This document shows, in pieces, positions 24,728 through 63,051 of a stretch of DNA of 64,000 nt. Each line of letters begins with the position of its first letter. Within the stretch, counting starts at the first letter, position 1. A program made the position numbers and the translations under genes. The stretch lies in sequence record MG655269.1. One strand, given 5' to 3'. The notes under the pieces were generated by a model. That model was not told the DNA's origin and searched no databases. It saw only the letters and a program-made list of their open reading frames with translations.

Positions 24728-25990
24728 ATGATCCTATCTAGCGGTCTGGAAGCGATTAGCTTTCAAAAGAATCCGCTCTTTTACAAACAGCTGGTTGTCG
24801 AATTCGGCCGTCTGATGGAACTTGCTAAAGCCAACGGTAAGAAGCGCTTGACCGAAGAGATGATGGCGCAATCTAACCTGGCGAAGATCACCATGGCGAA
24901 CACCGGTATCAAAGTCTCGCCTGGGGTGGATACCCGCATGCAGTGTAATGCGTACGTTATGATCCCAAGTATCAACTCCTATCACGTCTTCAATGATCGC
25001 ATGCGTCAGATCTTCTCAGGGTATGCCGAATCGTTTGAGCAGTTTCGTAAAGCCAACGATGTGTTGATTGGGTTGGTTGATCTGCAGAACTCCAAAGTGG
25101 GCGGGGTCTTCTCGACTATTGATCACCGCATCTGTCTGTCGTACGACATGATGACCGACTACGACATGACTCCGGGTGAAGTCGCCGCCATCTACATGCA
25201 TGAAGTCGGCCATGCTTTTACCTTCCTGGAGATGCTGCATTATACCGCTACCACTAACCTGGTGCTGACGGCCGGCATTGAAGCGATCATCAAATCAGAA
25301 ACTTCTCGTAAGCATGTCATCTTAAGTGATATCGAAAACTCCTTAGGGATTAAGATCGATAATAAAGATGAACTGGTCGCTTACGACAAGTATGAAGATT
25401 ATGCTGTCACGATCCTGTCGAAGTACAACCGCACCCTAGCGGCAGCCCTGGGTTCACCGGCACACGATGAATCGATGTCTGAGCAGATGGCGGATATGTT
25501 TGCCACCCGACATGGCGCGGGATTGGATCTGGCGCGCGGATTGTCCCGTATTCACAAATATTACAATTCACCGAAGTTTAAGTTTGCCCGCTATCTGGAG
25601 ATCTTTGTTGGCATCCTGCAGACCATGGGTTTGTCCCTGGTGTTCGATGTGCTGGGAGTGATCGTTGTCCTGACTGTCGGTAACTTCTTTGGTGGGACGT
25701 ATGACCGGGCGAAAGACCGTTTCATCCGCATGCGTAATGAGATCGTGGTCGGCCTGAAAGATGAAGAGATCAGTGCAGCTGACCGCAAACTCTTGATCAG
25801 TCATATCGCCGAGCTGGACAAGATCATTGCCCAGGCCAAAAACGAAAGCTCCTTTGTCGAGCAGCTGTCCCTGGTGGTGCGCGCCAGCCAGCGTGAGCGT
25901 TATGCCAGCAAGTACCTGCAAAAGGATCTTGAAGCCCTTCTTAATAATCCGCTCTATGTCAGTGCGGCCAAACTGAAAACATTGCAATAA
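24728..25990 (+). CDS. Head/virion protein with zincin metalloprotease motif
   Basis: AAGGAG RBS before ATG 24728; leader ILSSGLE; MHEVGH (HExxH) plus downstream EQMADMFA; hydrophobic hairpin near the C-terminus. Confidence 0.7.
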   Translation: MILSSGLEAISFQKNPLFYKQLVVEFGRLMELAKANGKKRLTEEMMAQSNLAKITMANTGIKVSPGVDTRMQCNAYVMIPSINSYHVFNDRMRQIFSGYAESFEQFRKANDVLIGLVDLQNSKVGGVFSTIDHRICLSYDMMTDYDMTPGEVAAIYMHEVGHAFTFLEMLHYTATTNLVLTAGIEAIIKSETSRKHVILSDIENSLGIKIDNKDELVAYDKYEDYAVTILSKYNRTLAAALGSPAHDESMSEQMADMFATRHGAGLDLARGLSRIHKYYNSPKFKFARYLEIFVGILQTMGLSLVFDVLGVIVVLTVGNFFGGTYDRAKDRFIRMRNEIVVGLKDEEISAADRKLLISHIAELDKIIAQAKNESSFVEQLSLVVRASQRERYASKYLQKDLEALLNNPLYVSAAKLKTLQ

Positions 25991-26512: not shown

Positions 26513-27979
26513 ATGTCTATTGATCTGATCGCTTCCTTTATCGACGATTCGGGCAATGTCCCGATGACGGCGCTGACTGTGGTAAAGAAAGAGAACGACG
26601 AAGCCAACGCACAACTGCCGAAACAGGTAGCGATGCTGAAAGCCTCTAACGAACGTATCGTTGAACTTCAGTCTGTGATCGAGCGCGTACGTCGTGAAGG
26701 CATGAGTCGTGAAGTTGCCGCGATTGTTGCCTCGATTGCACCTGAAGCGTTGCCGGTTGGCTACGGTGCTGAAGGTTTCACTGAGCAACCCTCAAAGCTC
26801 GGGATGGCTGCTGGTCTGGAATCGATCACCGCCTATGTGATTGATGGTATCAAACGTCTGATTGCGTTCCTGATTGATAAGGCCAAGAAAGCCGCTGCCT
26901 TTATTGTGGATCAGTATCGTCGTCTGACGGGCATTGCTCCCACTGCGTACAAGATCGATCGTCGTGCTGCTTATCTTACGGCGATGTCTGCCCGGTTTGC
27001 TCAGCATTTCGGTACGGATCTGGCGACCCTGTTAGAGCAGGATATCAATGCCGGTTTTACCAGTATCGAAAGTACTCGCATGGTATTAAGCGGTATGTTT
27101 GCTGATGCGGAAGTGTTGCAGGCGGATCTGTCTAAATATGGCAAGCACATCAATGTCATGTCCAAACAGATCGAAGCGTTACTGGCAGATGCGCCAACGC
27201 GTGTGGTGCGGGTCAATGCGATTGTTAATGATGTCACGGTATCGCGCAATGGCAGCAACGATCGCAGTGCAGAGATCCTGCGTCTGATCGACACCCGTAA
27301 CCTCGATGCCCTGGTCAGTACCTTGCGCAGCGTCAGTAAGTTACTGGTCAGCAGCCCGATGTACAAATCCACTGGCACTGGTAAAGACGGCAAAATCAAA
27401 CAGACTATCCTTGAGCAGTTAAACAGCGATGGTTTCCGTGAGATGATGTCCGGCCTTTCCATGGCTGCTAATGCTGGCATGACCCACACCATGGACATGA
27501 CGGATGCCTCGGCGATCATTCGTTCACGTAATCTGGCTGAGGCTGTTAAAGAGCTCACCAATTACGAAGAAGTGAAGAAGCGTTCACTGGATGACCTCAA
27601 GTCTGCTACTGGTTCGATCAACAGCAACAAATATGTGCAGGCCGCTGAACAGTCACCGGGTGATGACCCGACCATGGCAGCTGTGGTGCAGTTTAACCAA
27701 TACTGGGATGATGTCACGACCGCCGTAAAAGTGGCACAGGACATCACCACCGCCTACGCGGAGACAGTATTCAAACTGCAGCTGTTCTCGGTGCGTTGTC
27801 AAGACCTGGCGCTGGTACAGTGGTCCGCTAACCCAGCCAATGCCGGCCTGGCAGAAGCCAATGCCGCGACTGAACGTCTGCAGGCGGTGGTCAAGCAGTA
27901 TCTGGATAAGGTCGTGAAGAACACCACGGGCTTGAAAGGTGCGCTGGATGACCTCGGCAAACTGGTCAATCAACTGTAA
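26513..27979 (+). CDS. Head/inner-body protein with propeptide (AGLE|S)
   Basis: GAGGAG RBS; N-terminal ~105 aa ends in AAGLES, followed by an amphipathic helix; alignable with the next gene. Confidence 0.7.
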   Translation: MSIDLIASFIDDSGNVPMTALTVVKKENDEANAQLPKQVAMLKASNERIVELQSVIERVRREGMSREVAAIVASIAPEALPVGYGAEGFTEQPSKLGMAAGLESITAYVIDGIKRLIAFLIDKAKKAAAFIVDQYRRLTGIAPTAYKIDRRAAYLTAMSARFAQHFGTDLATLLEQDINAGFTSIESTRMVLSGMFADAEVLQADLSKYGKHINVMSKQIEALLADAPTRVVRVNAIVNDVTVSRNGSNDRSAEILRLIDTRNLDALVSTLRSVSKLLVSSPMYKSTGTGKDGKIKQTILEQLNSDGFREMMSGLSMAANAGMTHTMDMTDASAIIRSRNLAEAVKELTNYEEVKKRSLDDLKSATGSINSNKYVQAAEQSPGDDPTMAAVVQFNQYWDDVTTAVKVAQDITTAYAETVFKLQLFSVRCQDLALVQWSANPANAGLAEANAATERLQAVVKQYLDKVVKNTTGLKGALDDLGKLVNQL

Positions 27980-35420: not shown

Positions 35421-35960
35421 ATGGCAGATCGTGTTAGTACTGGTGCAGAGATTATCTACGGCACCGGCTTTACCTCCCATGGCGGCCCAGGACAGCAAGG
35501 CGTAAAGATCAACGTCGACAACAACGTCATTGATCTTTACCAGCGTTTGGCAGGCAACATCACGCTCGCCGGTAACTTTAACTTCCGAAAAGAAGTGTGT
35601 GTTACTGCTGCACGACTGTTACTGCCATTGCCAAACTGGCTCCTGGCCACCCGTAGTAATTACCTGCACTCCAAACACGCGCTGTTGTTCGCCCGTGACC
35701 TGGGGTTGATTGCGATGGGTAAGAGTCCGGACATGAGTGTGATGACGCGCATGCGTCTGTTTTCACCCAGTTCTGTGAAGTCCAACCCGGGTGAGCTGAA
35801 TGCGTCGAATTACGATGCACTCTCGTTGATCCCTAATAAGTTCATTGATGAGCTGCGTACCTATTCCAATGGTGCACAGCTGGCTAACCTGACCCGCGAC
35901 GCACAGCATGTGAAAGACCTGGTCACGTCATTATATGTCATGTTTGGTTCTGTTGAATAA
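35421..35960 (+). CDS. Putative head protein (phiKZ gp91-like)
   Basis: AAGGAG RBS before ATG 35421. Confidence 0.6.
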   Translation: MADRVSTGAEIIYGTGFTSHGGPGQQGVKINVDNNVIDLYQRLAGNITLAGNFNFRKEVCVTAARLLLPLPNWLLATRSNYLHSKHALLFARDLGLIAMGKSPDMSVMTRMRLFSPSSVKSNPGELNASNYDALSLIPNKFIDELRTYSNGAQLANLTRDAQHVKDLVTSLYVMFGSVE

Positions 35961-35997: not shown

Positions 35998-37587
35998 ATG
36001 AGTAAAGCATACCTCCATACCCTGCTGACTGCAGGTAATGAAGCGTTTGATGCAGCCGGCGAACCAGTGGGTGTGACTGTGGTTGATGCCCCGATCGAAG
36101 TGCCTGTTGTTGCAGACCCAGCAGTTGAGCCAGAAGCCCCAGCGGTAACTGATGCGCCAGTGGTTACGCAGGACCCGGTTGAGCCTGATCCAGAACCAGC
36201 AGCGGTCGTCGTTGCCATCAACGAAGATGAGAAAGAGCTGGTCATTGCGTCTACTGAAGCGGCTGCGGCCGAAGTGGTTGTGATCGAATCTGATTGCGCG
36301 CTGGAAGAAGTTGAAGACCTGCTCGACGACCAGATCCAGGTTGTAGCGGAAACTGAAAACATCGTCGCCTCTATGGAATCGTTCGTCGGTTCTGCGATGA
36401 CCATGCAGGATGCGCAAGCCCTGCAGCAGTGGGTGCATAACGCCACCCGTGGTCAGTATGATCAAGCTAAAGTTGTCGGCTCTCTGGAAGCGTTCGGTAA
36501 CGACGTCTCTACCGATGATGCGCTGAACGCTGGCCTGGAAGGGATCGGCGAGTTCCTGAAAGCTGCCCGTAACAAAGCAGCTGATCTGCGTAAAGTCATG
36601 GTTGCGCGCTGGAACGCTTTCTTCAAAGATGTGTTCGTGGGCTTTGATAAAGTTGCACGTCGTGCTGATGCGCTGGGTAAACTGGCGAAAGGTACTTCAG
36701 GCGAATCCAACTCCTCTACTATTCAGCTGCCGCTGGATACGGCCTGGCGTCTGGTGAAAGATGGTAAGGTTTCTCAGAACCTGCCGAAAGATCTGGGTGA
36801 CCTGGGTAAATTTGCCAAGGCGGTCTTTAAAGACAACCCGGAAGCGCTGCTGGTGCATCGTAAGAAACTGGTTGACATCGCTGTTCGTCTGTCTACTGCT
36901 GACTATGACGACGCACTGAAGATCGGCAAAGAGCTGGTGAACTTCGAACTGCCAAGCGTTGGCGTGTGCAAAACCAAAGTGGTCAACAACTCCAACACGG
37001 TTGATGTGTATCGCTCTGATGAGTTCCTGGGTGCGCTGTCTATTTTCTATTGCAAGCCTGTTGACAAAATCAATGCGCAGTTACCACTGCCGCGTCAGCT
37101 GTCTGACAAGTTCAACTCCATCATCGCGATCGATGTGAGCGTGTCTGAAACCGGTAAGAAAACACCGAAGCTGGATGTCTCTATTGATACCCTGCAGCCG
37201 GCTGAAATCGCCAAAGTGGCTGATGATGTTAACGCTATCCTGGGTGACATCCGTCAGTACCGCACCAACTACGGTGAGTGGTATGCTGCGAACAGCGATC
37301 TGGATCGTGTGATCGGTATCCTGGCGAACGTACCGTGGTCTGGCGATGCTGGCACCACTACTGTCGACAGCACCACTGATGCCGAGGGTAACACCTCAAC
37401 CATCGTGAACATCATCGGTCTGAACCGCGACCTGGCGGATGTGATTGAAGGCATGCATGACATGTATAGCTACCTGTCTGTGAGCCCGATCCGTGTCCTG
37501 TCTGCTGAACTGCTGCCAATCCTGAACCGTGCACTGGAAGTGGGTGAACGTTCTCTGGCAACCTACAGCGACAACAACCTGGCGTAA
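35998..37587 (+). CDS. Internal head protein (phiKZ_IP-like paralog)
   Basis: Leader LLTAGNE|AFD; acidic Pro/Val-rich propeptide; ASME, GSLE and AGLE sites. Confidence 0.75.
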   Translation: MSKAYLHTLLTAGNEAFDAAGEPVGVTVVDAPIEVPVVADPAVEPEAPAVTDAPVVTQDPVEPDPEPAAVVVAINEDEKELVIASTEAAAAEVVVIESDCALEEVEDLLDDQIQVVAETENIVASMESFVGSAMTMQDAQALQQWVHNATRGQYDQAKVVGSLEAFGNDVSTDDALNAGLEGIGEFLKAARNKAADLRKVMVARWNAFFKDVFVGFDKVARRADALGKLAKGTSGESNSSTIQLPLDTAWRLVKDGKVSQNLPKDLGDLGKFAKAVFKDNPEALLVHRKKLVDIAVRLSTADYDDALKIGKELVNFELPSVGVCKTKVVNNSNTVDVYRSDEFLGALSIFYCKPVDKINAQLPLPRQLSDKFNSIIAIDVSVSETGKKTPKLDVSIDTLQPAEIAKVADDVNAILGDIRQYRTNYGEWYAANSDLDRVIGILANVPWSGDAGTTTVDSTTDAEGNTSTIVNIIGLNRDLADVIEGMHDMYSYLSVSPIRVLSAELLPILNRALEVGERSLATYSDNNLA

Positions 37588-37605
37588 CCGTCATAAGGCA
37601 AAGAG

Positions 37606-38991
37606 ATGTCTTTACACCAAAAGCTCCTCTCTGCCGGGCTGGAGGCGTTTGATGCGCCTCCGGCTGCTCCGGTAGTAGCGGCAGTAGTACCTGCTCCATT
37701 TGATAACAACGCCCCGGTTAGCGAAGACCCGGAACTGCTTCGTGAAGAGACTGCTGCCCGTTTAGCGCTCGTGTCGATCATCGAAGCGGAACGTGACGAA
37801 GAAGACTCTCGGTCAGCGGTTTATGAACTGCGTCGTCTGTCTGATGGTTTGGAAGGGTTGATGGTTGAGATTCAAAACGTCAACAACCCAGAAGAACCGA
37901 CTGAAGACGAAATGGCGATGTTGAAAGCCACCGCCCAGCAAGTACGTAAAGAGCTGCTGGAAGATGGTGAGCAAGAACTCGTCATCAATGTCGAAAACGG
38001 CATTCTGGTTGGTTCACAGGAAGGTCTGGCTGATGCCCTCAGTAATGTGGCGAAGAAGATCGGTTTTGCATTAGGTAATGCAGCGAAAGGTTTACTGAGC
38101 AAAGGCGAGCAGGCGAAAGCGCCGTTGTCTTATAACCGTAAACTGGCAGCTGAACTGAAAGCGAAAATCGATAAGCTCGGCACGACTGAATTTGACTTTA
38201 CCATGCCAGCTGATCTGGTCCGTCAGATTCGTGTGAGTGATACCGGTCCGGTTGATGCACTCAAAGCAGTAGCAGACTTCCCGGCAGCACTTGAGGCTTG
38301 GTATCTGACCCCTGCTGATGCAGCAATGAACCTGTTTGAAAAACACGCCAACATCGTGCAGGCGATTGCCGGTAGCAAGACTCTCGAAGAGTTCAATACG
38401 AATTATGCGAAACTGAGCTCACTGGCGCCACCGCTGCCTGCAGGCGCTAAACGCCTTGATCCGATTAACACGCGGGATTATATCTTCGACGTTAATGAAC
38501 ATCACCCAAGTATGGGTCGTGTGGCTCGCTACTATTATGTTGCGCGTCCGGATGTGGGTAAAACGCCTGAAGATAAAGCGCTGGATAATGTCATTGCTTT
38601 GGCGCAGTATTCGACCGGGATCTATCCGTTCGATAAGATCTCTAAACGCAAAGCAACTGATGAGCAGGTGAAGTTCAGCGCGGCTGAAGTCAAAGGCTTG
38701 CTGGATGACATGCTGAAAGCGTGTGACGTGGTTGATAAGTACCTTTCACGTCTTGCAGTCGCCAGCACAATGGATAAGCGCTACAACGCTCTGGTTGATT
38801 TACTCAATAGCGACTTGCGTAAACAAGAGTGGTGTTCCACAGAAGTCAACCGCATGGCACGCGTTGCGTTGATCTCAATGGATGCGTATTATTCATACGG
38901 GTTTGCTTATACCAGTCGTGCTTACGAGCTGATGGAGGTGATCGTCAAGTTGGTGAAGAAAGCCGTGTATAAATCTGACCTCAGTAAGTAA
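37606..38991 (+). CDS. Internal head protein paralog
   Basis: Leader LLSAGLE|AFD; acidic propeptide; GSQE site. Confidence 0.72.
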   Translation: MSLHQKLLSAGLEAFDAPPAAPVVAAVVPAPFDNNAPVSEDPELLREETAARLALVSIIEAERDEEDSRSAVYELRRLSDGLEGLMVEIQNVNNPEEPTEDEMAMLKATAQQVRKELLEDGEQELVINVENGILVGSQEGLADALSNVAKKIGFALGNAAKGLLSKGEQAKAPLSYNRKLAAELKAKIDKLGTTEFDFTMPADLVRQIRVSDTGPVDALKAVADFPAALEAWYLTPADAAMNLFEKHANIVQAIAGSKTLEEFNTNYAKLSSLAPPLPAGAKRLDPINTRDYIFDVNEHHPSMGRVARYYYVARPDVGKTPEDKALDNVIALAQYSTGIYPFDKISKRKATDEQVKFSAAEVKGLLDDMLKACDVVDKYLSRLAVASTMDKRYNALVDLLNSDLRKQEWCSTEVNRMARVALISMDAYYSYGFAYTSRAYELMEVIVKLVKKAVYKSDLSK

Positions 38992-39002
38992 ACGGAGAAA
39001 AC

Positions 39003-40373
39003 ATGTCCGCGATTAATGACTTTCTATTTACTGCGGGCATGGAGGGGTTTAACGACCCCTCCTCTATACCGCCCGTTGGTATAGTTGTGCCCTTTTTTGG
39101 TGTTGAGGAGTTCGCCGAAGCGGATGCTGAACAATCTGTACGTATGACAGAGATGAACCAGCAAGCCGAAGCAATTCAACGCCTGCAACAAACGCTGGTC
39201 TACATCAACGCTCACCGCCCAACCTTTGACCGTGAGAACGCCGCTGTCGTGCAGCAAGCGCTGGGTGAAGTACAGGTACTGATGCCTGACATGGAAGACC
39301 CGGTCACCATCATGGGGTCGCTGGAGCATTATACCCCGGCTTACACCAACCACTTGCTTGCGCACGGTATTGAAGGCATTGGTGATAAGATCCTGAGCGT
39401 GGTCAAGAAGATCATCGAACTCTTGAAGAAAGGTTATGCCTTCTTGAGTAAAGCCATCCAGGCAAAGGGTGTGGTCTTCGGTAAACAGAAGCGCGAACTC
39501 GATGAGCTCAATGCATGGTTTAAAGATCAACGCAAAAGCAACGATAAACCCGCTACCACCACCGGTAATGAACCTAAGGTTGTTACGGTCACTGCCCCGA
39601 CCTATCTGTACACCGTCGACAGTAACAAACCGTTAGCGGCGGATCGCTTAGCAAGCGAAGTGGCGAAGTACAACAAATTCCTGCAGGCCTTCTCGGTTGA
39701 TTTCATCCGGGCGCATATTACCCTGGGTGATCTCTGTATTCGCGCGCTGGGCACGCTGGATATTGCCAGTACCAGTAACGAAGAGTTGTTCACCAAGATG
39801 TTTAAGGGTCAGTTTAAATACCAGGCCTCGGGTGCAACGCTGTACACCAAACGCAATGGCGAAATGTGCGATATCGAAACAGTCGGGTTGATTGGTGGGA
39901 TTGGCTTTAAAGCCTCCATCGCGAATATCCTGGTCGCACCGCTTGAGATGACCGCAGACGGCTCTAACCAGCGTAAGTTCTTTAAGCAGATGAACGGGCT
40001 GTATAACTACAGTTTTGTCTCCAAAATAAAAATGGATGGCAGTACGGTGGGTAATACCCCAATCTATGCTTGCAGTCTCGCTGACGCTGAGCGGTTGGTG
40101 AATCAACTTGATATGCTGACCAACTGGATGATTAACAGTCAGCACGACGAAGAGATCCGTGACTTTAATAAACGGGTGACTGAGTGTGTGGATAAGCTGG
40201 CTGATCGTGCTGGTCGTCTGGGTAATGACCGCAGTGATTTTATCACTACTGTGATCAATGCCTTGTCTGGTATCTCCAGTGGTCTGGAAAATGTGTCTCG
40301 TGGCATGAATCAGCAAACGAACACATTGATCAACAACTTGCGTGAGTACGTTACCAAATCCACGAAAGCGTAA
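39003..40373 (+). CDS. Internal head protein paralog
   Basis: Leader LFTAGME|GFN; GSLE and HGIE sites. Confidence 0.72.
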   Translation: MSAINDFLFTAGMEGFNDPSSIPPVGIVVPFFGVEEFAEADAEQSVRMTEMNQQAEAIQRLQQTLVYINAHRPTFDRENAAVVQQALGEVQVLMPDMEDPVTIMGSLEHYTPAYTNHLLAHGIEGIGDKILSVVKKIIELLKKGYAFLSKAIQAKGVVFGKQKRELDELNAWFKDQRKSNDKPATTTGNEPKVVTVTAPTYLYTVDSNKPLAADRLASEVAKYNKFLQAFSVDFIRAHITLGDLCIRALGTLDIASTSNEELFTKMFKGQFKYQASGATLYTKRNGEMCDIETVGLIGGIGFKASIANILVAPLEMTADGSNQRKFFKQMNGLYNYSFVSKIKMDGSTVGNTPIYACSLADAERLVNQLDMLTNWMINSQHDEEIRDFNKRVTECVDKLADRAGRLGNDRSDFITTVINALSGISSGLENVSRGMNQQTNTLINNLREYVTKSTKA

Positions 40374-40466
40374 ATTATTATATGTGTTAATGGCCCTGCA
40401 GGAAACGCGGGGCCTTATCACAATACGATCGTATTTAATTTCATGAAATTAAGGTAGAGACTCACT

Positions 40467-41822
40467 ATGTCTATTCAAGCATTTTTAAACCTCGGCGCCG
40501 AGGCTTTCGAAGACGCACCGGTTGTTGAAGAAGCACCGGTTGTAGTTGTTGCACCAGTACCAGAAGAAGTGATCGAGCTGATTGCCGAGCGTGATGATTC
40601 GAACATCGCCCTGGCTATTGCTCAGGATGCGGCGGCAATGTCTGCTGCTGAGCGTCAGGTGGAAGAGTTTGCTTCCGCAATCGAGCGCGTTGAAAATGTC
40701 CAGGCATCAATGGAGCACTTCATCGAAGCGGGCCTGTCGCAGAAATCAGCAATGATGCTGCATCGCCAGATCTCAACAGTTATGGCATCTGTCGGCAAGG
40801 ATGGCAGCGCCATCGGTGGCGGTCTGGAAAACTTCGACAACGAAGAAGCCAGCATTGCACTGCTGACCGCTGGTCTGGAAGCACTGGATGCCGAGAAAGC
40901 CGATCTGTCCTCCCGTGCCGGTGCATCTATTGCCGGTATCGCTGGTAACATTAAAAGCTTTCTGGGCAACATCAGTACTCAGGCCGGTCGTTATAAACTG
41001 CGTGCTGAAGCGATCGTTAAATCTGCTGACGGCGCTGAAGCCAAGTCCGGTACTGTTGAAGTAAAAGATAAACACCTGGTTGTAAAAGGTGGCAATCCAT
41101 CAACTAACCTGAAAGGCGATCTGGGTAACTTCAGCAAGCTGGTTGGTGCGGCAATCGCTACCTTCATCGAAGGCGATATCGTTAAAGAAGGCAGCGCCCT
41201 GGCAAAAGCTGGCGAGACCATCATTAAAGCGACTACCGCTGATGTGGCAGTGAAAGCTGCAATGGGTGTGAAACACAATCCATTCCCGGGCGCAACCATC
41301 GCAGTGCAGGACAAAGACACCTTCAGTATCAAACGTACTGAAGTGGTTCTCGGCGGCTATGCGGTATTCGATCTGCAATATAAAGCCACCGGCGGCGAAG
41401 GTGCTGAAGCAGCTGTTGCGCATCTGAATGCACTGAGCAAAAACCGCGTTACTCTTCGTCAGGCTCCAGTTGAAGCTGGTAGCGAGAAAGTATTCTCTGC
41501 CACTATGTCTCCGGCCGATGGCGCAGCACTGGCGAAAGATGTTATCGCAATGCTGGACAACATCACAGCGGTCAATAACCGTAGCCTGGGTGCGGTAAGT
41601 GGCGCACTGGCCCGTCTGGGTACCAGCGCTGTGTTGAAAGGCGCTGTGGCGAAAGACGCAGACAAAGACGTGAAGAAAATTGCTGGCGCCATGGGTAAAA
41701 CCCTGGTTGGTTCTATCCAGGCTGTTAACAGTCTGCCACGCGATGCCCTGAGCGCTGCGCTGAAAGTGTCTGATGCTGTACTGAAAGTTGCTAAGAAAGC
41801 TGCTGCAGGTCAAGTAGACTAA
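40467..41822 (+). CDS. Internal head protein paralog (probably high copy)
   Basis: Leader FLNLGAE|AFE; ASME, GGLE and AGLE sites; codon usage typical of highly expressed genes; own structured leader. Confidence 0.75.
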   Translation: MSIQAFLNLGAEAFEDAPVVEEAPVVVVAPVPEEVIELIAERDDSNIALAIAQDAAAMSAAERQVEEFASAIERVENVQASMEHFIEAGLSQKSAMMLHRQISTVMASVGKDGSAIGGGLENFDNEEASIALLTAGLEALDAEKADLSSRAGASIAGIAGNIKSFLGNISTQAGRYKLRAEAIVKSADGAEAKSGTVEVKDKHLVVKGGNPSTNLKGDLGNFSKLVGAAIATFIEGDIVKEGSALAKAGETIIKATTADVAVKAAMGVKHNPFPGATIAVQDKDTFSIKRTEVVLGGYAVFDLQYKATGGEGAEAAVAHLNALSKNRVTLRQAPVEAGSEKVFSATMSPADGAALAKDVIAMLDNITAVNNRSLGAVSGALARLGTSAVLKGAVAKDADKDVKKIAGAMGKTLVGSIQAVNSLPRDALSAALKVSDAVLKVAKKAAAGQVD

Positions 41823-41893: not shown

Positions 41894-44236
41894 ATGTCAA
41901 CCATGACAGAACTGGGTCCGTCACAAGGCACACTCCTTGCCGATGAGAAAGCAGTACACGATGACGCGGCCACCGAAGCCACCGAAGTTGCACTCCACGT
42001 ATTAAAGAAGATTGGTAAGAAGAAAGAGAAAGATGACGAGGATGAAGAGGTCGTGCTCTCCTTTGGTAGCGAAGGCTATGCCATGCTCACCAGTATGTCA
42101 TTTGATCTGACTGAGAACTCCGATCTGGCCGTACAGGAACTCCTGGATAAGATCACCACCATCGTCATTGAAGCAAATGGCAATCTCACGCAGACCGATC
42201 TGGAGAAGATCAAGAGTGTGGGGAATGAGTCGTTGTTAGGCGATGGGAATGAAGACTATAAAGAAGTCGTCACCATGGTCATGAAACGGATCATGCAATT
42301 CATTCGCTGGGCGATCAACCAAGGTAAGGAAGGGATCAAGCGGGTTGCTGACCGCCTGAGTCGTCTGAGCGTGAAGACGATGTATGTTGAGCGTAAGATC
42401 GATATCTCCACTGACAACTCATTGCCGACTGACAAGTTTGTGTTACCGCGCAGCTATCCGATGCTGATGATGGCGAACAAACCGCCGGCCAATGCCATGG
42501 AAGTGATCAACGCCGTCAACCGCACCAAGTATCTCTTCACTACGCTACATAACGACTACCAAGGCTTCCAGACGTTGTTTAAGACGGCGGTGTCAACTGG
42601 TTCACGGGCTGACACCTTAGAGATGATCAACAACTATCTCAACGGTCTGATCAGTAAGCTCTCAGCACGCCCTAACCCACTGTTCGATAACCGCAATACC
42701 TTTAACCAGTTACCGGGTGGATATCGTCTGGTGTTCTCAGAAGGTCAGTCGTTTGCGGATTGCGGGGCAACGATCCTGCGTACGCCGGAGAAATACGAAG
42801 CCGCACCGGCTGTTCAGCGTCCAGATAAAGCGAGCCTGGTACGGTTGGTCAGTGAGATCAAAACCTACCTGCGGGTGATTAACGAAGTTTACGGTAAAGT
42901 CTCCAGTCGGTTGGAGGTTGATTTCCGTAACATCGTGAAAGCCGCTGAGAAAGAAGTGAAGGGGTTTGATTCAACAGCAGATATCCGCACTGCCTCAACC
43001 ACCATCGAGTGGTTCACCGAACAGCAGTCACGTCTGTATACCCGCTCAATGATGCTCTCTTGTACGGTATTGAATGCCGCACTTGATTACTGTCTGGGTG
43101 CCATTGGGGCGAAACCGGCTGCCGGTACCGAAAGCTTTGATATCCTTGATACCTCATCAATGGGTTATGCGATCGAGTCGCTGGGTGAGCAAATGGAACG
43201 GCTTGATGCTGGGTTATGTGAGTTGGAGATTGATACCCGTACTATGCAGTCGATCACCGATGTTAAAGAGATGGTAGATGTCGATAACGATCATGTTATC
43301 CAGCTTCTGATGCAACAGCGCCCAAGCAGCTATTTCAATCCACCGGATGGACTGTCAGAGTACTCGCTGGGTGATGCCTTTAACGGCAGTGCTACGGTAC
43401 GTTATATTGGCAGGCGCTTAACCAGCATCGTTAACCTCACGAATCAGCTTTCAGGCACCACGGATTTGATGAAAGGGTTATTGGCTGAAATGCCAACGGG
43501 CGAGATCAAGCCAGGCAGTGATGCGGATGTGATCGAGCGTAACTCGTTGCTTGACCGGGAGATGTTTGAAGGCCATCCCCTGTGTGCGTTCCTGCATCGG
43601 GTAGACCGGGAAGGTATCTACGCCACCGATGTGATTCGTTATGTTACTGACACCTATGAGAAGCTGCGTCAAGTGCGCACGACTCTGGCGGTTCAGGCTG
43701 AGCAGATGACACTAACAGTGGCTGATGGCGAGATGAACGTGAGCTTGTTGAAAGAGTTCCTGTTTAACGCCCCTCAGGAGCCCTTCACGGACAGCGTGCT
43801 CTGTGGTGGATTCAGACTACAACCTGTAGCAGAAAAGCTCGGAGAACTCGTTATACACGGTGCTGTGATGGATTCCCCTCCACCACTGAAACCGATGACG
43901 ACTATCCATCGCCCAAGCTACGACGAGTATAATGGTGTCAACCAGCTGGCAAGCCTGTTCGGTAATGAACTGCGGGAACTGGCTAAGATCGCAGAGCGGC
44001 TACAAATCGGCACAGGGTATTTGCGCTACATCACAACCTCAGTAGCGGACAACCTCAATGAGGATGGCTTGAAAGGGGGTGGTGATGGTTGGTTCAATAC
44101 TGCACTTGAGTACTTGGCGGTGTCAGCACGCCAGTATCGCTGGATGTATCGCCTAACTGTTCAGTTGGCGGTGTATGAACACACCATGATCAATGCCCTG
44201 CGTCACTACAACAACTCAGGAGGCTGGCATGACTGA
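41894..44236 (+). CDS. Large head protein, possible two-module polyprotein
   Basis: 780 aa; FGSE and VGNE sites in the N-terminal region; internal AGTE|SFD and YAIE|S sites near the middle. Confidence 0.65.
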   Translation: MSTMTELGPSQGTLLADEKAVHDDAATEATEVALHVLKKIGKKKEKDDEDEEVVLSFGSEGYAMLTSMSFDLTENSDLAVQELLDKITTIVIEANGNLTQTDLEKIKSVGNESLLGDGNEDYKEVVTMVMKRIMQFIRWAINQGKEGIKRVADRLSRLSVKTMYVERKIDISTDNSLPTDKFVLPRSYPMLMMANKPPANAMEVINAVNRTKYLFTTLHNDYQGFQTLFKTAVSTGSRADTLEMINNYLNGLISKLSARPNPLFDNRNTFNQLPGGYRLVFSEGQSFADCGATILRTPEKYEAAPAVQRPDKASLVRLVSEIKTYLRVINEVYGKVSSRLEVDFRNIVKAAEKEVKGFDSTADIRTASTTIEWFTEQQSRLYTRSMMLSCTVLNAALDYCLGAIGAKPAAGTESFDILDTSSMGYAIESLGEQMERLDAGLCELEIDTRTMQSITDVKEMVDVDNDHVIQLLMQQRPSSYFNPPDGLSEYSLGDAFNGSATVRYIGRRLTSIVNLTNQLSGTTDLMKGLLAEMPTGEIKPGSDADVIERNSLLDREMFEGHPLCAFLHRVDREGIYATDVIRYVTDTYEKLRQVRTTLAVQAEQMTLTVADGEMNVSLLKEFLFNAPQEPFTDSVLCGGFRLQPVAEKLGELVIHGAVMDSPPPLKPMTTIHRPSYDEYNGVNQLASLFGNELRELAKIAERLQIGTGYLRYITTSVADNLNEDGLKGGGDGWFNTALEYLAVSARQYRWMYRLTVQLAVYEHTMINALRHYNNSGGWHD

Positions 44237-60783: not shown

Positions 60784-63051
60784 ATGGCATTGAAACTTCT
60801 GCATGTAGCTAAAACCGCCGACATGCTGTCACGCATCCAATCTCAGATCAATGGCGGCCATGCATCAGGCGACGCTACCGCGGTTAAAAGCTACGGTATG
60901 GAGTCGCTTGACGGCAACACTCTGGGCGCGCAGGAAACCGCCATCAAAAATGGTATCTCTGTCATTACCGACGTGATCGCTCAGGGCACTGCATCTCAGG
61001 GCCAGAGCTACGCCGGTAACGGTCTGGAAGGTTTCTCTGATGCACAGATCCAAGCGGCATCAATCGCACTGACTATCGGTGGTGACTTCCAGGGTTACAT
61101 CGGTGCACTGAAAAACAACTCTAACCGTGCCATGTCTGCATCTGACCTGAGCCTGGTTTCCGGTAGCCGTTACGGCTCTGCTAACATGAAGCAGGGTTAC
61201 GGTACCGAAGCTTTCGAACAGGCGCAGAGCTTTGTTCCTCAGCAGAACGCAACGGTTGAATACAACCTGAAAGCGGCTAAGCAGGATGCCGTTGGTGAAG
61301 CCTTCTTCCCAACTACTACCCTGACGCCAAACGACATCGGCCTGAGCGTAACTGTGCCGGTTGACATCGTTGAACCTTTCATCAAGCACAAAGCAAATGG
61401 CGAAGTGACGGATTGGCAGCGTAAGAAGCTCATCAACGCAATGCGTGACCCGACCATTCTGCGTAACGACGCGATCAAGCTGATTCCTTATCGTCCACTG
61501 GACGGCAGCAACGACGCACAGTTCGCAGTAGGCGTGCCGAAGTTCAACGAAATTCAGGGCGGCGAAGAAGTACCAACTGGTGCACTGAAGCCTGGTATCA
61601 AAATCGGTTTCATGGGTCTGTGCTCTACTCCGTCTCTGGTTCAGGCCGGCGCGCTGGAAGCATCTGATCAGATCGACACCGGTGCGCGTCTGCAGTACAT
61701 CTGGATCGAAGTAGCTAACGCCTCTGGCACCAAAGAGCTGTTCAAGCTGCGTACTGATCACCTGGATCGTTCTACTTTCCAGAAATCTCAGGAAGGCGAT
61801 AAGTTCGAGACGTCTCTGGACTTCTCTAACATCACCATCGCGCTGAACGACCTGAACAAAACCACCGACAACACCGATTCAGCTCTGCTGGCTCCGTTGG
61901 TGACTTCTGGTCAGCAAGCGATCCTGGCGCTGGATATCAAAGGCACCATGAACCACGAGAAAGGCAGCCTGGTAGTTAACTCGCTGACTAACCCGTCTAT
62001 CATCCGTGTTTACGATACCGTGGCTAAAGAAGATGCGAACACCAAGTCTGGTGCTCTGCGTGACGCAATCGACGCTCTGACGATCACCTTCAAAGGTTAC
62101 TTCGTCCGCGCTAACCTGCGTAACAGCAACTTCCGTACCCGCGAGCAGCGTGTTGACCGCCAGACTTCCGTGTACAAGTACATGGTACAGCTGGGCGCGC
62201 CAATCACTGCTATCGCTCCAGTAACTGACGCATGGGGCCCGAAAGAGTCTATCGCAGTTGAAACCCTGAGCAACGCAACGTATGCACGTAACTCCGCAAT
62301 GGCTATCAGCCGTCTGCTGGACTACGTTGAAACCATCCGTGATGCAGGCGTGACCAACAACGGCCTGTGGCAGCGTTACGATGAGAACAGCATCGAAGGC
62401 GTTGGTAAAGCTGTAGTTGATCCATGGTACGGCGAAGGTAGCTTTGACATCTCTAAAGTTGTCAACGGTGTTAAATCTTCTCAGACCCGCGACGACGTTT
62501 CTGAAAAGATCCTGAACATCCTGCGTACCTACGCATACCGCATGAACGCCGAGTCTGGCTACAACGTTGCACTGCAGATGCTGTACAACGAAGTTCAGCC
62601 AACGCTGGTTATCGCAACCGACAACATCATCGCGCAGTACCTGATGGAAGTTGGTGACCTCCGCACAGCTGGTATCAGCTTCAAAGTGCACGTGGCCACC
62701 ACCAACAACATCGAGATGCGCGGCAAGATCATCATGACCCTGTCTCGTATGAAGTCAGGTGGTCTGGATCTGCTGACGTTCGGTATGCACCTGTGGGTAC
62801 CTGAGATCGTAGCAACTGTTAACGTAATGCGTAACGGTACCTACATCGAAGAAACCATGGTGCAGCCGCGTAACCTGCACGTAGTGGTTTGCCCAATCGT
62901 GGCGAACATCACCATCACCGGTCTGGAAGAAGCGTACACCGGCAAGATCACTGTCCCTGTTGACATCGTGAGCGAGCCTGAGTCTGCTGGTACCCAGGAC
63001 CTGGGTGGTCTGAACACTACTCCGGCAACTACTACCAACCCTGCTGCGTAA
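60784..63051 (+). CDS. Major capsid protein (phiKZ gp120-like)
   Basis: 755 aa; codon bias of a highly expressed gene; propeptide sites YGME, NGLE and YGTE|AF; AAKQDAVGEAFFPT motif; follows DnaB and gp119 as in phiKZ. Confidence 0.92.
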   Translation: MALKLLHVAKTADMLSRIQSQINGGHASGDATAVKSYGMESLDGNTLGAQETAIKNGISVITDVIAQGTASQGQSYAGNGLEGFSDAQIQAASIALTIGGDFQGYIGALKNNSNRAMSASDLSLVSGSRYGSANMKQGYGTEAFEQAQSFVPQQNATVEYNLKAAKQDAVGEAFFPTTTLTPNDIGLSVTVPVDIVEPFIKHKANGEVTDWQRKKLINAMRDPTILRNDAIKLIPYRPLDGSNDAQFAVGVPKFNEIQGGEEVPTGALKPGIKIGFMGLCSTPSLVQAGALEASDQIDTGARLQYIWIEVANASGTKELFKLRTDHLDRSTFQKSQEGDKFETSLDFSNITIALNDLNKTTDNTDSALLAPLVTSGQQAILALDIKGTMNHEKGSLVVNSLTNPSIIRVYDTVAKEDANTKSGALRDAIDALTITFKGYFVRANLRNSNFRTREQRVDRQTSVYKYMVQLGAPITAIAPVTDAWGPKESIAVETLSNATYARNSAMAISRLLDYVETIRDAGVTNNGLWQRYDENSIEGVGKAVVDPWYGEGSFDISKVVNGVKSSQTRDDVSEKILNILRTYAYRMNAESGYNVALQMLYNEVQPTLVIATDNIIAQYLMEVGDLRTAGISFKVHVATTNNIEMRGKIIMTLSRMKSGGLDLLTFGMHLWVPEIVATVNVMRNGTYIEETMVQPRNLHVVVCPIVANITITGLEEAYTGKITVPVDIVSEPESAGTQDLGGLNTTPATTTNPAA

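Follow-up and report, generated by a model that had tools for sequence, protein, structure and literature searches.

The window analysed here is a stretch of 64,000 nucleotides corresponding to record positions 211001-275000 of Erwinia phage vB_EamM_MadMel (MG655269.1, genus Agricanvirus), that is, to the last 64 kb of the record, and it includes four tandem genes, gp298 to gp301, whose products are labelled hypothetical proteins in GenBank and which are followed in the same array by gp302. The element under study is the short N-terminal leader with which each of the four proteins begins. Internal proteins of phage T4 carry a 10-residue N-terminal capsid-targeting sequence (CTS) that ends in Glu and is removed by the prohead protease, and a preliminary description of the window had proposed an analogous signal in what it called four tandem head proteins. 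Considered as a whole, the evidence makes it probable that these leaders belong to the Agricanvirus version of the leader-plus-propeptide architecture of PF12699, the family of phiKZ-like phage internal head proteins, and that this architecture is trimmed by the S80 prohead protease gp172. The genes and leaders are as follows, the arrow marking the bond behind the terminal Glu.

gp298: 35998..37587, plus strand; 529 residues; PF12699 match with E 5e-76
gp298 leader: residues 1-15, 35998-36042, plus strand; ends in GNE-15↓AFD
gp299: 37606..38991, plus strand; 461 residues; diverged paralog by hhalign
gp299 leader: residues 1-13, 37606-37644, plus strand; ends in GLE-13↓AFD
gp300: 39003..40373, plus strand; 456 residues; PF12699 match at 32.9 bits
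gp300 leader: residues 1-14, 39003-39044, plus strand; ends in GME-14↓GFN
gp301: 40467..41822, plus strand; 451 residues; PF12699 match with E 1.3e-45
gp301 leader: residues 1-12, 40467-40502, plus strand; ends in GAE-12↓AFE
gp302: 41894..44236, plus strand; 780 residues; fifth, longer PF12699 paralog
gp297: 35421..35960, plus strand; homolog of the phiKZ vertex-binding protein gp91 (PF25618, E 1.4e-41)

The gathering threshold of PF12699 is 27 bits, and the Pfam scores of gp298 (256.9 bits), gp301 (156.7), gp302 (35.7) and gp300 all lie above this cut-off. gp299 is without a Pfam match and aligns by hhalign with a profile of gp298 orthologs (probability 67%, E 5e-5, 310 columns); of the four leader proteins, gp298, gp300 and gp301 reach the Pfam threshold, whereas gp299 is probably a diverged paralog, a status that its place in the array supports. 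The gene order gp289-gp302 mirrors that of phiKZ gp84-gp97, with gp297 serving as the synteny anchor (gp298-302 corresponding to phiKZ gp92-97). Because of this gene order and of their membership in PF12699, gp298-gp301 can be regarded as corresponding, in MadMel, to the inner-body/ejection proteins of phiKZ and to gp53/gp54 of SPN3US; in terms of sequence, they are tandem paralogs of that family. Orthologs have been detected as proteins using liquid chromatography-tandem mass spectrometry of crude lysates, namely RAY gp295 (identical to MadMel gp298) and RAY gp298 (the ortholog of MadMel gp301), together with Deimos-Minion gp301 and gp304. Over the 5.8 kb of gp298-gp301, the sequence is 100% identical to that of MadMel, and identity to the group of RAY, Deimos-Minion, Simmy50, Special G and Ea35-70 amounts to 97-99%; the five-gene array with the same leaders is also found in Erwinia phage AH06, in Salmonella phage SA002, in Proteus phage 10 and in a number of contigs from uncultivated viruses. 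A tblastn search with gp298 reaches only the clade of Agricanvirus, SA002 and Proteus phage 10; the more distant relatives were found by PF12699 searches of the phiKZ, SPN3US and 201phi2-1 records.

The N-termini of the four proteins, that of the head protein gp289 (see below) and the site in the capsid protein are all present in the sequence exactly as first described. The start codons of the leader proteins have ribosome-binding sites and agree with the GenBank annotation of MadMel, and the leaders of gp298-gp301 share the consensus M-S-x(1-3)-L-x-x-hydrophobic-hydrophobic-x-x-G-x-E↓(A/G)-F-(D/E/N). The earlier characterization of a hydrophobic leader of 8-15 residues ending in G-x-E stands as regards length and ending, but the segment, part of a predicted helix spanning residues 3-19, is amphipathic rather than simply hydrophobic. 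Proteome-wide counts, made on the 275-kb MadMel genome rebuilt from the pieces of the GenBank record, show how much of the motif is informative: a bare [S/A/G]-x-E within the first 26 residues occurs 92 times over the N-termini of the roughly 325 proteins predicted and, being so common, is by itself worthless as evidence and was rejected as such. A position matrix of the leader was built solely from 21 distant orthologs of gp298, to the exclusion of MadMel sequences and of the other paralog groups. Its ranks 1-5 among 325 MadMel N-termini are occupied by gp299, gp298, gp300, gp301 and gp289, and only 1-7 of 78,737 internal positions score equally high. From paralog to paralog the leader is 36-60% identical and the remainder of the protein 13-26%, and in the comparison of the gp298 profile with gp299 the leader is the part that hhalign aligns most confidently. 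The shared leader is real and significant, not a product of chance. Within the MadMel proteome the matrix search of N-termini yielded nothing further that was convincing except gp289; gp188, gp150, gp187 and gp169, which have A-G-x-E near the N-terminus, were considered as additional leader proteins and discarded, their scores lying in the null range.

What the leader ending corresponds to can be read from a family alignment of the MadMel paralogs with SA002, phiKZ gp93-95 and SPN3US gp53/gp54, in which the leader Glu of all four proteins (GNE-15, GLE-13, GME-14 and GAE-12) falls in one column with SLE-13 of phiKZ gp93 and ARE-12 of SPN3US gp53. Mass spectrometry of wild-type virions showed cleavage at ARE-12 of gp53 in three replicates (PMC10052503, Table 2), and the cut of phiKZ gp93 between Glu13 and Ser14 is attributed to Thomas et al. 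2012 by PMC5694885 and PMC11297242; in the cryo-electron microscopy (cryo-EM) map of the phiKZ capsid, gp93 is modelled from Ser14 onward (PMC11297242). The same source gives a cut at Glu17↓Arg18 for phiKZ gp162, with which the N-terminus read from the genome (...FFASLE↓R) is consistent, and the same leader layout is seen in phiKZ gp94, gp95 and gp97 as well as in three 201phi2-1 paralogs. Further downstream, a second MadMel site, 110-166 residues past the leader, shares the column of the maturation cuts AQE-125 of SPN3US gp53 and ARE-137 of gp54, both verified by mass spectrometry (PMC10052503, Table 2), and a third site, for instance SLE-164 in gp298, shares that of AQE-124 in SPN3US gp54. 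From this alignment, the following maturation cuts are predicted.

gp298 predicted maturation cut: GLE-181↓G, Glu codon at 36538-36540, plus strand
gp299 predicted maturation cut: SQE-139↓G, 38020-38022, plus strand
gp300 predicted maturation cut: GIE-124↓G, 39372-39374, plus strand
gp301 predicted maturation cut: GLE-138↓A, 40878-40880, plus strand; also the best non-N-terminal match of the leader matrix

The predicted propeptides of gp298, gp299, gp300 and gp301 would accordingly measure 181, 139, 124 and 138 residues. Since the leader and the downstream sites share columns with verified cuts, the original view that a short leader precedes the main propeptide is correct by homology, and the reading of the leader endings as prohead-protease sites is supported by sequence. 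One trait of the T4 proteins, in which the mature protein starts directly after the leader, does not extend to gp298-gp301, whose maturation cut lies, by homology, at residues 124-181. A strict correspondence between the leader's P3 residue and the capsid-protein site of each phage was considered and dropped, as the phiKZ leaders have SLE and the phiKZ capsid protein is cut at GLE-163.

The enzyme expected to act on these sites is encoded elsewhere in the genome:

gp172: record positions 139677-140465, outside the window; prohead protease, full-length Peptidase_S80 match (PF20034, E 1.6e-86)

gp172 shares 30% identity with gp245, the prohead protease of SPN3US, and its gene has the same neighbourhood as in that phage, with virion RNA polymerase subunits followed by gp169 and gp170, the counterparts of SPN3US gp243 and gp244. 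By analogy with these systems, it is very probably gp172 that removes the leader. To our knowledge, the proteases of this family characterized so far, i.e. those of phiKZ, 201phi2-1, SPN3US and T4, cut solely after Glu; gp21 of T4 and the S80 enzymes are distant relatives (PMC9026906). When a second matrix, built from all collected leaders, was scanned for internal sites, it matched expected substrates at E138 of gp301, GLE-82↓GFSD in the capsid propeptide, E185 of gp289, two sites of gp6 and one of gp166, so that the preference of the protease may account for a large part of the extended similarity (hydrophobic-x-A-G-x-E↓A/G-hydrophobic-acidic).

The sequence features, the homology to verified cleavage sites and the protease gene are all present in MadMel; cleavage itself, the fate of the fragments and any share of the leader in targeting would, by analogy, take the following course. 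Each of gp298-gp301 begins with a predicted amphipathic helix of 12-15 residues ending in a putative recognition site of gp172, with a second, similar site (L-x-A-G-L-E↓G) at residues 124-181 as the predicted maturation cut. The full precursors would be built into the prohead via their N-terminal region, comprising the leader and the arm behind it, whereupon the protease would cleave both behind the leader Glu and at the sites further downstream. The 12-15-mer would be lost, the arm may remain on the inner face of the shell as in the case of phiKZ gp93, and the helical domain, once freed, would travel with the DNA. That the leader contributes materially to incorporation is conceivable, although we would place it somewhat below an even chance; that it suffices alone, like a T4 CTS, appears improbable.

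Several observations weigh against this account and others in its favour. The verified leader cuts come from phiKZ and SPN3US and none of them from an Agricanvirus, and the all-leader matrix also matches the chimallin gp224 and the helicase gp132, neither of which is expected in heads, which means that it is not a clean predictor. The AlphaFold2 model of gp298 fits the account, the helix 3-19 being followed by a disordered stretch (21-71) and by a folded helical domain from residue 76, but the confidence of the leader helix is only about 64 (predicted local distance difference test). In about 10 of about 32 distinct leaders of the gp298 type, as well as in paralogs 1-3 of Proteus phage 10, Asn, Gln or Asp stands in place of the P1 Glu, whereas L6 and G13 are invariant; given that the proteases of the family cut only after Glu, cleavage at this position cannot be a universal requirement. 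Asn is found in P0002-P0006, P0015, P0018, L053 and paralogs 1 and 2 of Proteus phage 10, Gln in P0007 and Asp in paralog 3 of Proteus phage 10, and in all of them the remaining motif is retained. These Glu-less proteins do retain Glu at their downstream sites, apart from one Cys (P0007, in the column of GLE-181), and the same phages have the leader Glu in their other paralogs, which makes a change in protease specificity improbable. Retention of the motif after loss of its Glu suggests that it is maintained for something besides cleavage and lends indirect support to a docking role; in the literature examined, such retention in several lineages was not found discussed. Conservation is island-like as well: among 23 gp298 orthologs only Met1, Leu6 and Gly13 are invariant ahead of residue 78, and the arm that connects the leader to the helical PF12699 domain is rich in Pro, Val, Ala and acidic residues and predicted to be disordered. 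Both patterns favour some binding function. At the same time, the leader is restricted within MadMel to one paralog family and gp289, and so does not act as a general ticket into the head.

What the leader does beyond ending in a protease site can be explained in different ways. According to the first, it would be nothing but a cleavage site, the first of several redundant ones at which the propeptide is chopped for clearance, its conservation reflecting subsite preferences of the protease and not targeting. The extended motif (hydrophobic-x-A/x-G-x-E↓A/G-hydrophobic) does recur at the internal maturation sites and in the capsid propeptide, and built-in redundancy of sites has been described for phiKZ propeptides (PMC9026906), with the same rationale given for SPN3US (PMC5694885). 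Yet the loss of 12-15 out of 124-181 propeptide residues would help clearance little, and neither the constant distance of the site from Met1 in phiKZ, 201phi2-1, SPN3US and MadMel nor the persistence of the motif when Glu becomes Asn, Gln or Asp is explained in this way. We consider this explanation unlikely.

A second explanation, closest to the proposal of the preliminary description, is a true T4-style CTS, in which the leader of 8-15 residues binds the prohead core, is both necessary and sufficient, and could carry foreign cargo. The likeness is not new, having been in print since 2017 for the sister phage SPN3US: Ali et al. 2017 reported that the N-terminal 15 residues are the same in gp53 as in gp54 and include AXE-12, inferred cleavage there from the analogy with SLE-13 of phiKZ gp93, and called this N-terminus 'reminiscent of ... 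the T4 CTSs' (PMC5694885). Position, length and terminal Glu are as in the T4 CTS (PMC9026906), no other element is as well conserved between the paralogs, whose identity elsewhere is 13-26%, and the conservation of the leader even without Glu argues for a binding role. C-terminally truncated SPN3US gp47, in which the propeptide is retained, is still packaged, and on this ground Ali et al. proposed that giant-phage propeptides are CTS-like (PMC5694885). In addition, gp53 and gp54 of SPN3US require gp243 to enter the head, and MadMel has a homolog of it in gp169, both proteins being full-length matches to phrog_3841. (gp169 itself, L004:36667-38205, has a leader-like A-A-G-V-E-12, but its Glu varies among orthologs between E, D and P.) Against sufficiency speaks the phiKZ structure, where the parts bound to the capsid shell are gp93 14-84 and gp162 19-134, directly after the leader (Yang et al., PMC11297242); the arm, and not the leader, is thus the only part with demonstrated shell binding, which suggests by analogy that targeting resides at least partly in the adjoining arm. 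Moreover, 110-166 further propeptide residues follow the leader, unlike in T4 internal proteins, and a signal confined to one paralog family plus gp289 fits poorly with the dozens of head proteins that need packaging. On balance, a T4-style CTS in the strict sense is rather doubtful.

Thirdly, the leader might serve some other role independent of cleavage, either as an amphipathic helix directing the protein to a membrane-associated assembly site or as an intramolecular chaperone acting on its own domain until removal by the protease. The amphipathic helix 3-19, predicted with moderate confidence, and the dispensability of the Glu in relatives would fit such a role; however, a mean hydrophobicity near zero is weak for membrane binding, and a disordered linker of 50 residues separates the leader from the domain. 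We regard this role as very improbable. Finally, chance resemblance or mis-called starts, to which the abundance of the bare motif near N-termini might have pointed, can be taken as already refuted by the matrix ranks, by the presence of the same leaders in every relative having the five-gene array and by starts that combine ribosome-binding sites with agreement with the annotation.

The leader-plus-propeptide account leaves room for a bolder version, in which the leader would be a cleavage-independent docking motif for a prohead component, such as the capsid propeptide or a factor of the gp169/SPN3US-gp243 type, and would, alone or with the arm, suffice to bring any chosen cargo into chimallivirus capsids, to be injected from there. 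We hold this version to be less probable than its alternatives taken together by a wide gap, and the same reserve applies to the core that it would have, L-x-x-hydrophobic-hydrophobic-x-x-G-x-(E/N/Q)-(A/S)-F-(D/E).

The fifth N-terminus found by the matrix belongs to gp289, and the capsid protein gp320 contains related sites:

gp289: 24728..25990, plus strand; 420-residue head protein homologous to phiKZ gp84 and SPN3US gp45
gp289 leader: residues 1-8, 24728-24751, plus strand; MILSSGLE-8↓AISFQK
gp320: 60784..63051, plus strand; major capsid protein, 755 residues
gp320 site GLE-82↓GFSD: Glu codon at 61027-61029, plus strand; strong motif copy (...AGNGLE-82↓GFSD) upstream of GTE-142
gp320 site GTE-142↓AFE: YGTE at residues 139-142, 61198-61209, plus strand; in the propeptide

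The start of gp289 is preceded by the ribosome-binding site AAAGGAG, its homology to phiKZ gp84 and SPN3US gp45 is expressed in E values of 9e-27 and 7e-26, and a second copy of the motif lies at GIE-185↓A. GLE-8↓AISFQK lines up with ...VASE-20↓SIGFQDK of SPN3US gp45, where the ASE-20 cut was verified by mass spectrometry (PMC10052503) and whose propeptide was singled out as the sole one in SPN3US of T4-CTS length (Ali et al. 2017, PMC5694885). The two proteins share the flank E↓(S/A)-I-(G/S)-F-Q and differ in the length of the leader, 20 residues in gp45 and 8 in gp289; as in gp45, the mature gp289 may start right after the leader. In an alignment of major capsid proteins, GTE-142 of gp320 lies six residues before the column of ATE-130 of SPN3US (PMC10052503) and GLE-163 of phiKZ (Glu163↓Asn164, PMC11297242), both verified cuts, and the two sites of gp320 suggest that its propeptide is cut into at least two pieces.

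Motif copies were also seen in other proteins. In the large head protein gp6 (L002:6076-8934, minus strand; 952 residues; phrog_3004, head and packaging), copies lie at GME-182↓A and GME-280↓A. Their spacing is reminiscent of the SPN3US portal, whose long propeptide is cut twice (at 161 and 254), and gp6 is possibly the MadMel portal. In gp166, a virion RNA polymerase beta-type subunit (L004:31124-35707), the copy reads ...NGTGLE-200↓NFDD; phiKZ and 201phi2-1 process the homologous subunit, and SPN3US does not (Ali et al. 2017, PMC5694885), and gp166 may follow the phiKZ pattern. The DEAD/SNF2-type helicase gp132 (L003:47486-49609, record 97486-99609, minus strand; 707 residues) contains two strong copies, ...AVGLE-659↓SFEE and ...FLSAGME-676↓AWLD, 30-50 residues before the C-terminus, which could be due to chance or could mark the C-terminal propeptide of a packaged enzyme. 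The mutual paralogs gp111, gp187 and gp188 (L003:32729-33694, L005:5881-6321 and L005:6384-7349; phrog_6709/10834, function unassigned) have A-G-x-E motifs at residue 41, residues 19 and 70, and residue 18, respectively, and may be further substrates of the protease; proteins with neighbouring gene numbers were detected by mass spectrometry of RAY lysate. The first 100 residues of gp291 (26513-27979) match PF12699 weakly and below the threshold (E 5e-4). The same holds for the syntenic phiKZ gp86, a minor capsid protein that undergoes processing and belongs to the vertex complex. An internal ...PVGYGAE↓GFTE in gp291 resembles the site of the capsid protein.

Within the array, gp302 has an N-terminus (...TLLADE-18↓K) that is conserved in relatives and unlike the leaders of gp298-gp301. 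In Agricanvirus-like phages it has the form ...LGP-x-Q-x-TLL-x-DE, and in the group of SA002 and Proteus phage 10 the form ...LS(L/F)GV-x-HQ-x-(L/V)-x-x-E↓(Y/F), with the Glu at residues 17-18 and an S/A/G-x-E fit that is not constant (orthologs in L040-L042 and L049-L055). The 93-nucleotide gap between gp300 and gp301, the only sizeable intergenic gap of the array, holds at 40392-40414 a G+C-rich hairpin, GGCCCTGC...GCGGGGCC, which is terminator-like and has no clear T-run.

In phiKZ-like (nucleus-forming) jumbo phages, PF12699 proteins are packed in hundreds to thousands of copies and injected with the DNA. We know of no separate scaffold protein identified, and no packaging signal mapped, in these phages. 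A docking motif would be the first packaging signal mapped for this phage family, and a short transferable tag, if it existed, would explain the recruitment of PF12699 proteins and offer simple protein delivery into bacteria by jumbo phages, as the T4 CTS does for T4; survival of the leader motif after loss of its Glu points to such a binding role. Cargo loading through the whole protein already works, since plasmid-supplied phiKZ gp93 with a C-terminal mNeonGreen is packaged and injected (Guan et al. 2022). As regards annotation, four hypothetical proteins become putative precursors of internal-head/ejection proteins with predicted processing maps, gp172 a prohead protease, and gp289 a homolog of the processed head protein SPN3US gp45.

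When compared with known systems, the likeness to the CTSs of T4 IPI, IPII, IPIII and Alt consists in a short N-terminal peptide ending at a prohead-protease Glu, 12-15 residues long in the four MadMel proteins, 8 in gp289 and 10-19 in T4, where packaging needs no more than the first 10 residues of IPIII (PMC9026906). The likeness is one of position, length and terminal Glu. In T4 the mature protein comes right after the CTS and sufficiency for packaging is proven, whereas in MadMel a long second propeptide follows, and several relatives have the Glu replaced. With phiKZ gp93 and gp162, the MadMel proteins share homology, a syntenic array and a leader of equal length in the same alignment column; phiKZ gp93, 94, 95 and 97 start with a hydrophobic stretch ending in SLE at residues 11-13, with Ser at P3 where MadMel has Gly, and residues 14-84 of phiKZ gp93 are seen by cryo-EM to stay behind as shell-bound fibres. 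SPN3US differs from MadMel in having two paralogs, as opposed to four plus a fifth variant, in being the one of the two phages in which cleavage is verified, and in its basic leader (...KSKLARE, with Ala at P3), which contrasts with L-L-x-A-G-x-E↓A-F-D and its P3 Gly. Nevertheless, its gp53 and gp54, the 'paralog family A' ejection proteins, belong like the MadMel proteins to PF12699, share a short N-terminal peptide conserved across diverged paralogs, and combine a leader cut with a later maturation cut in the same columns, separated by a long propeptide.

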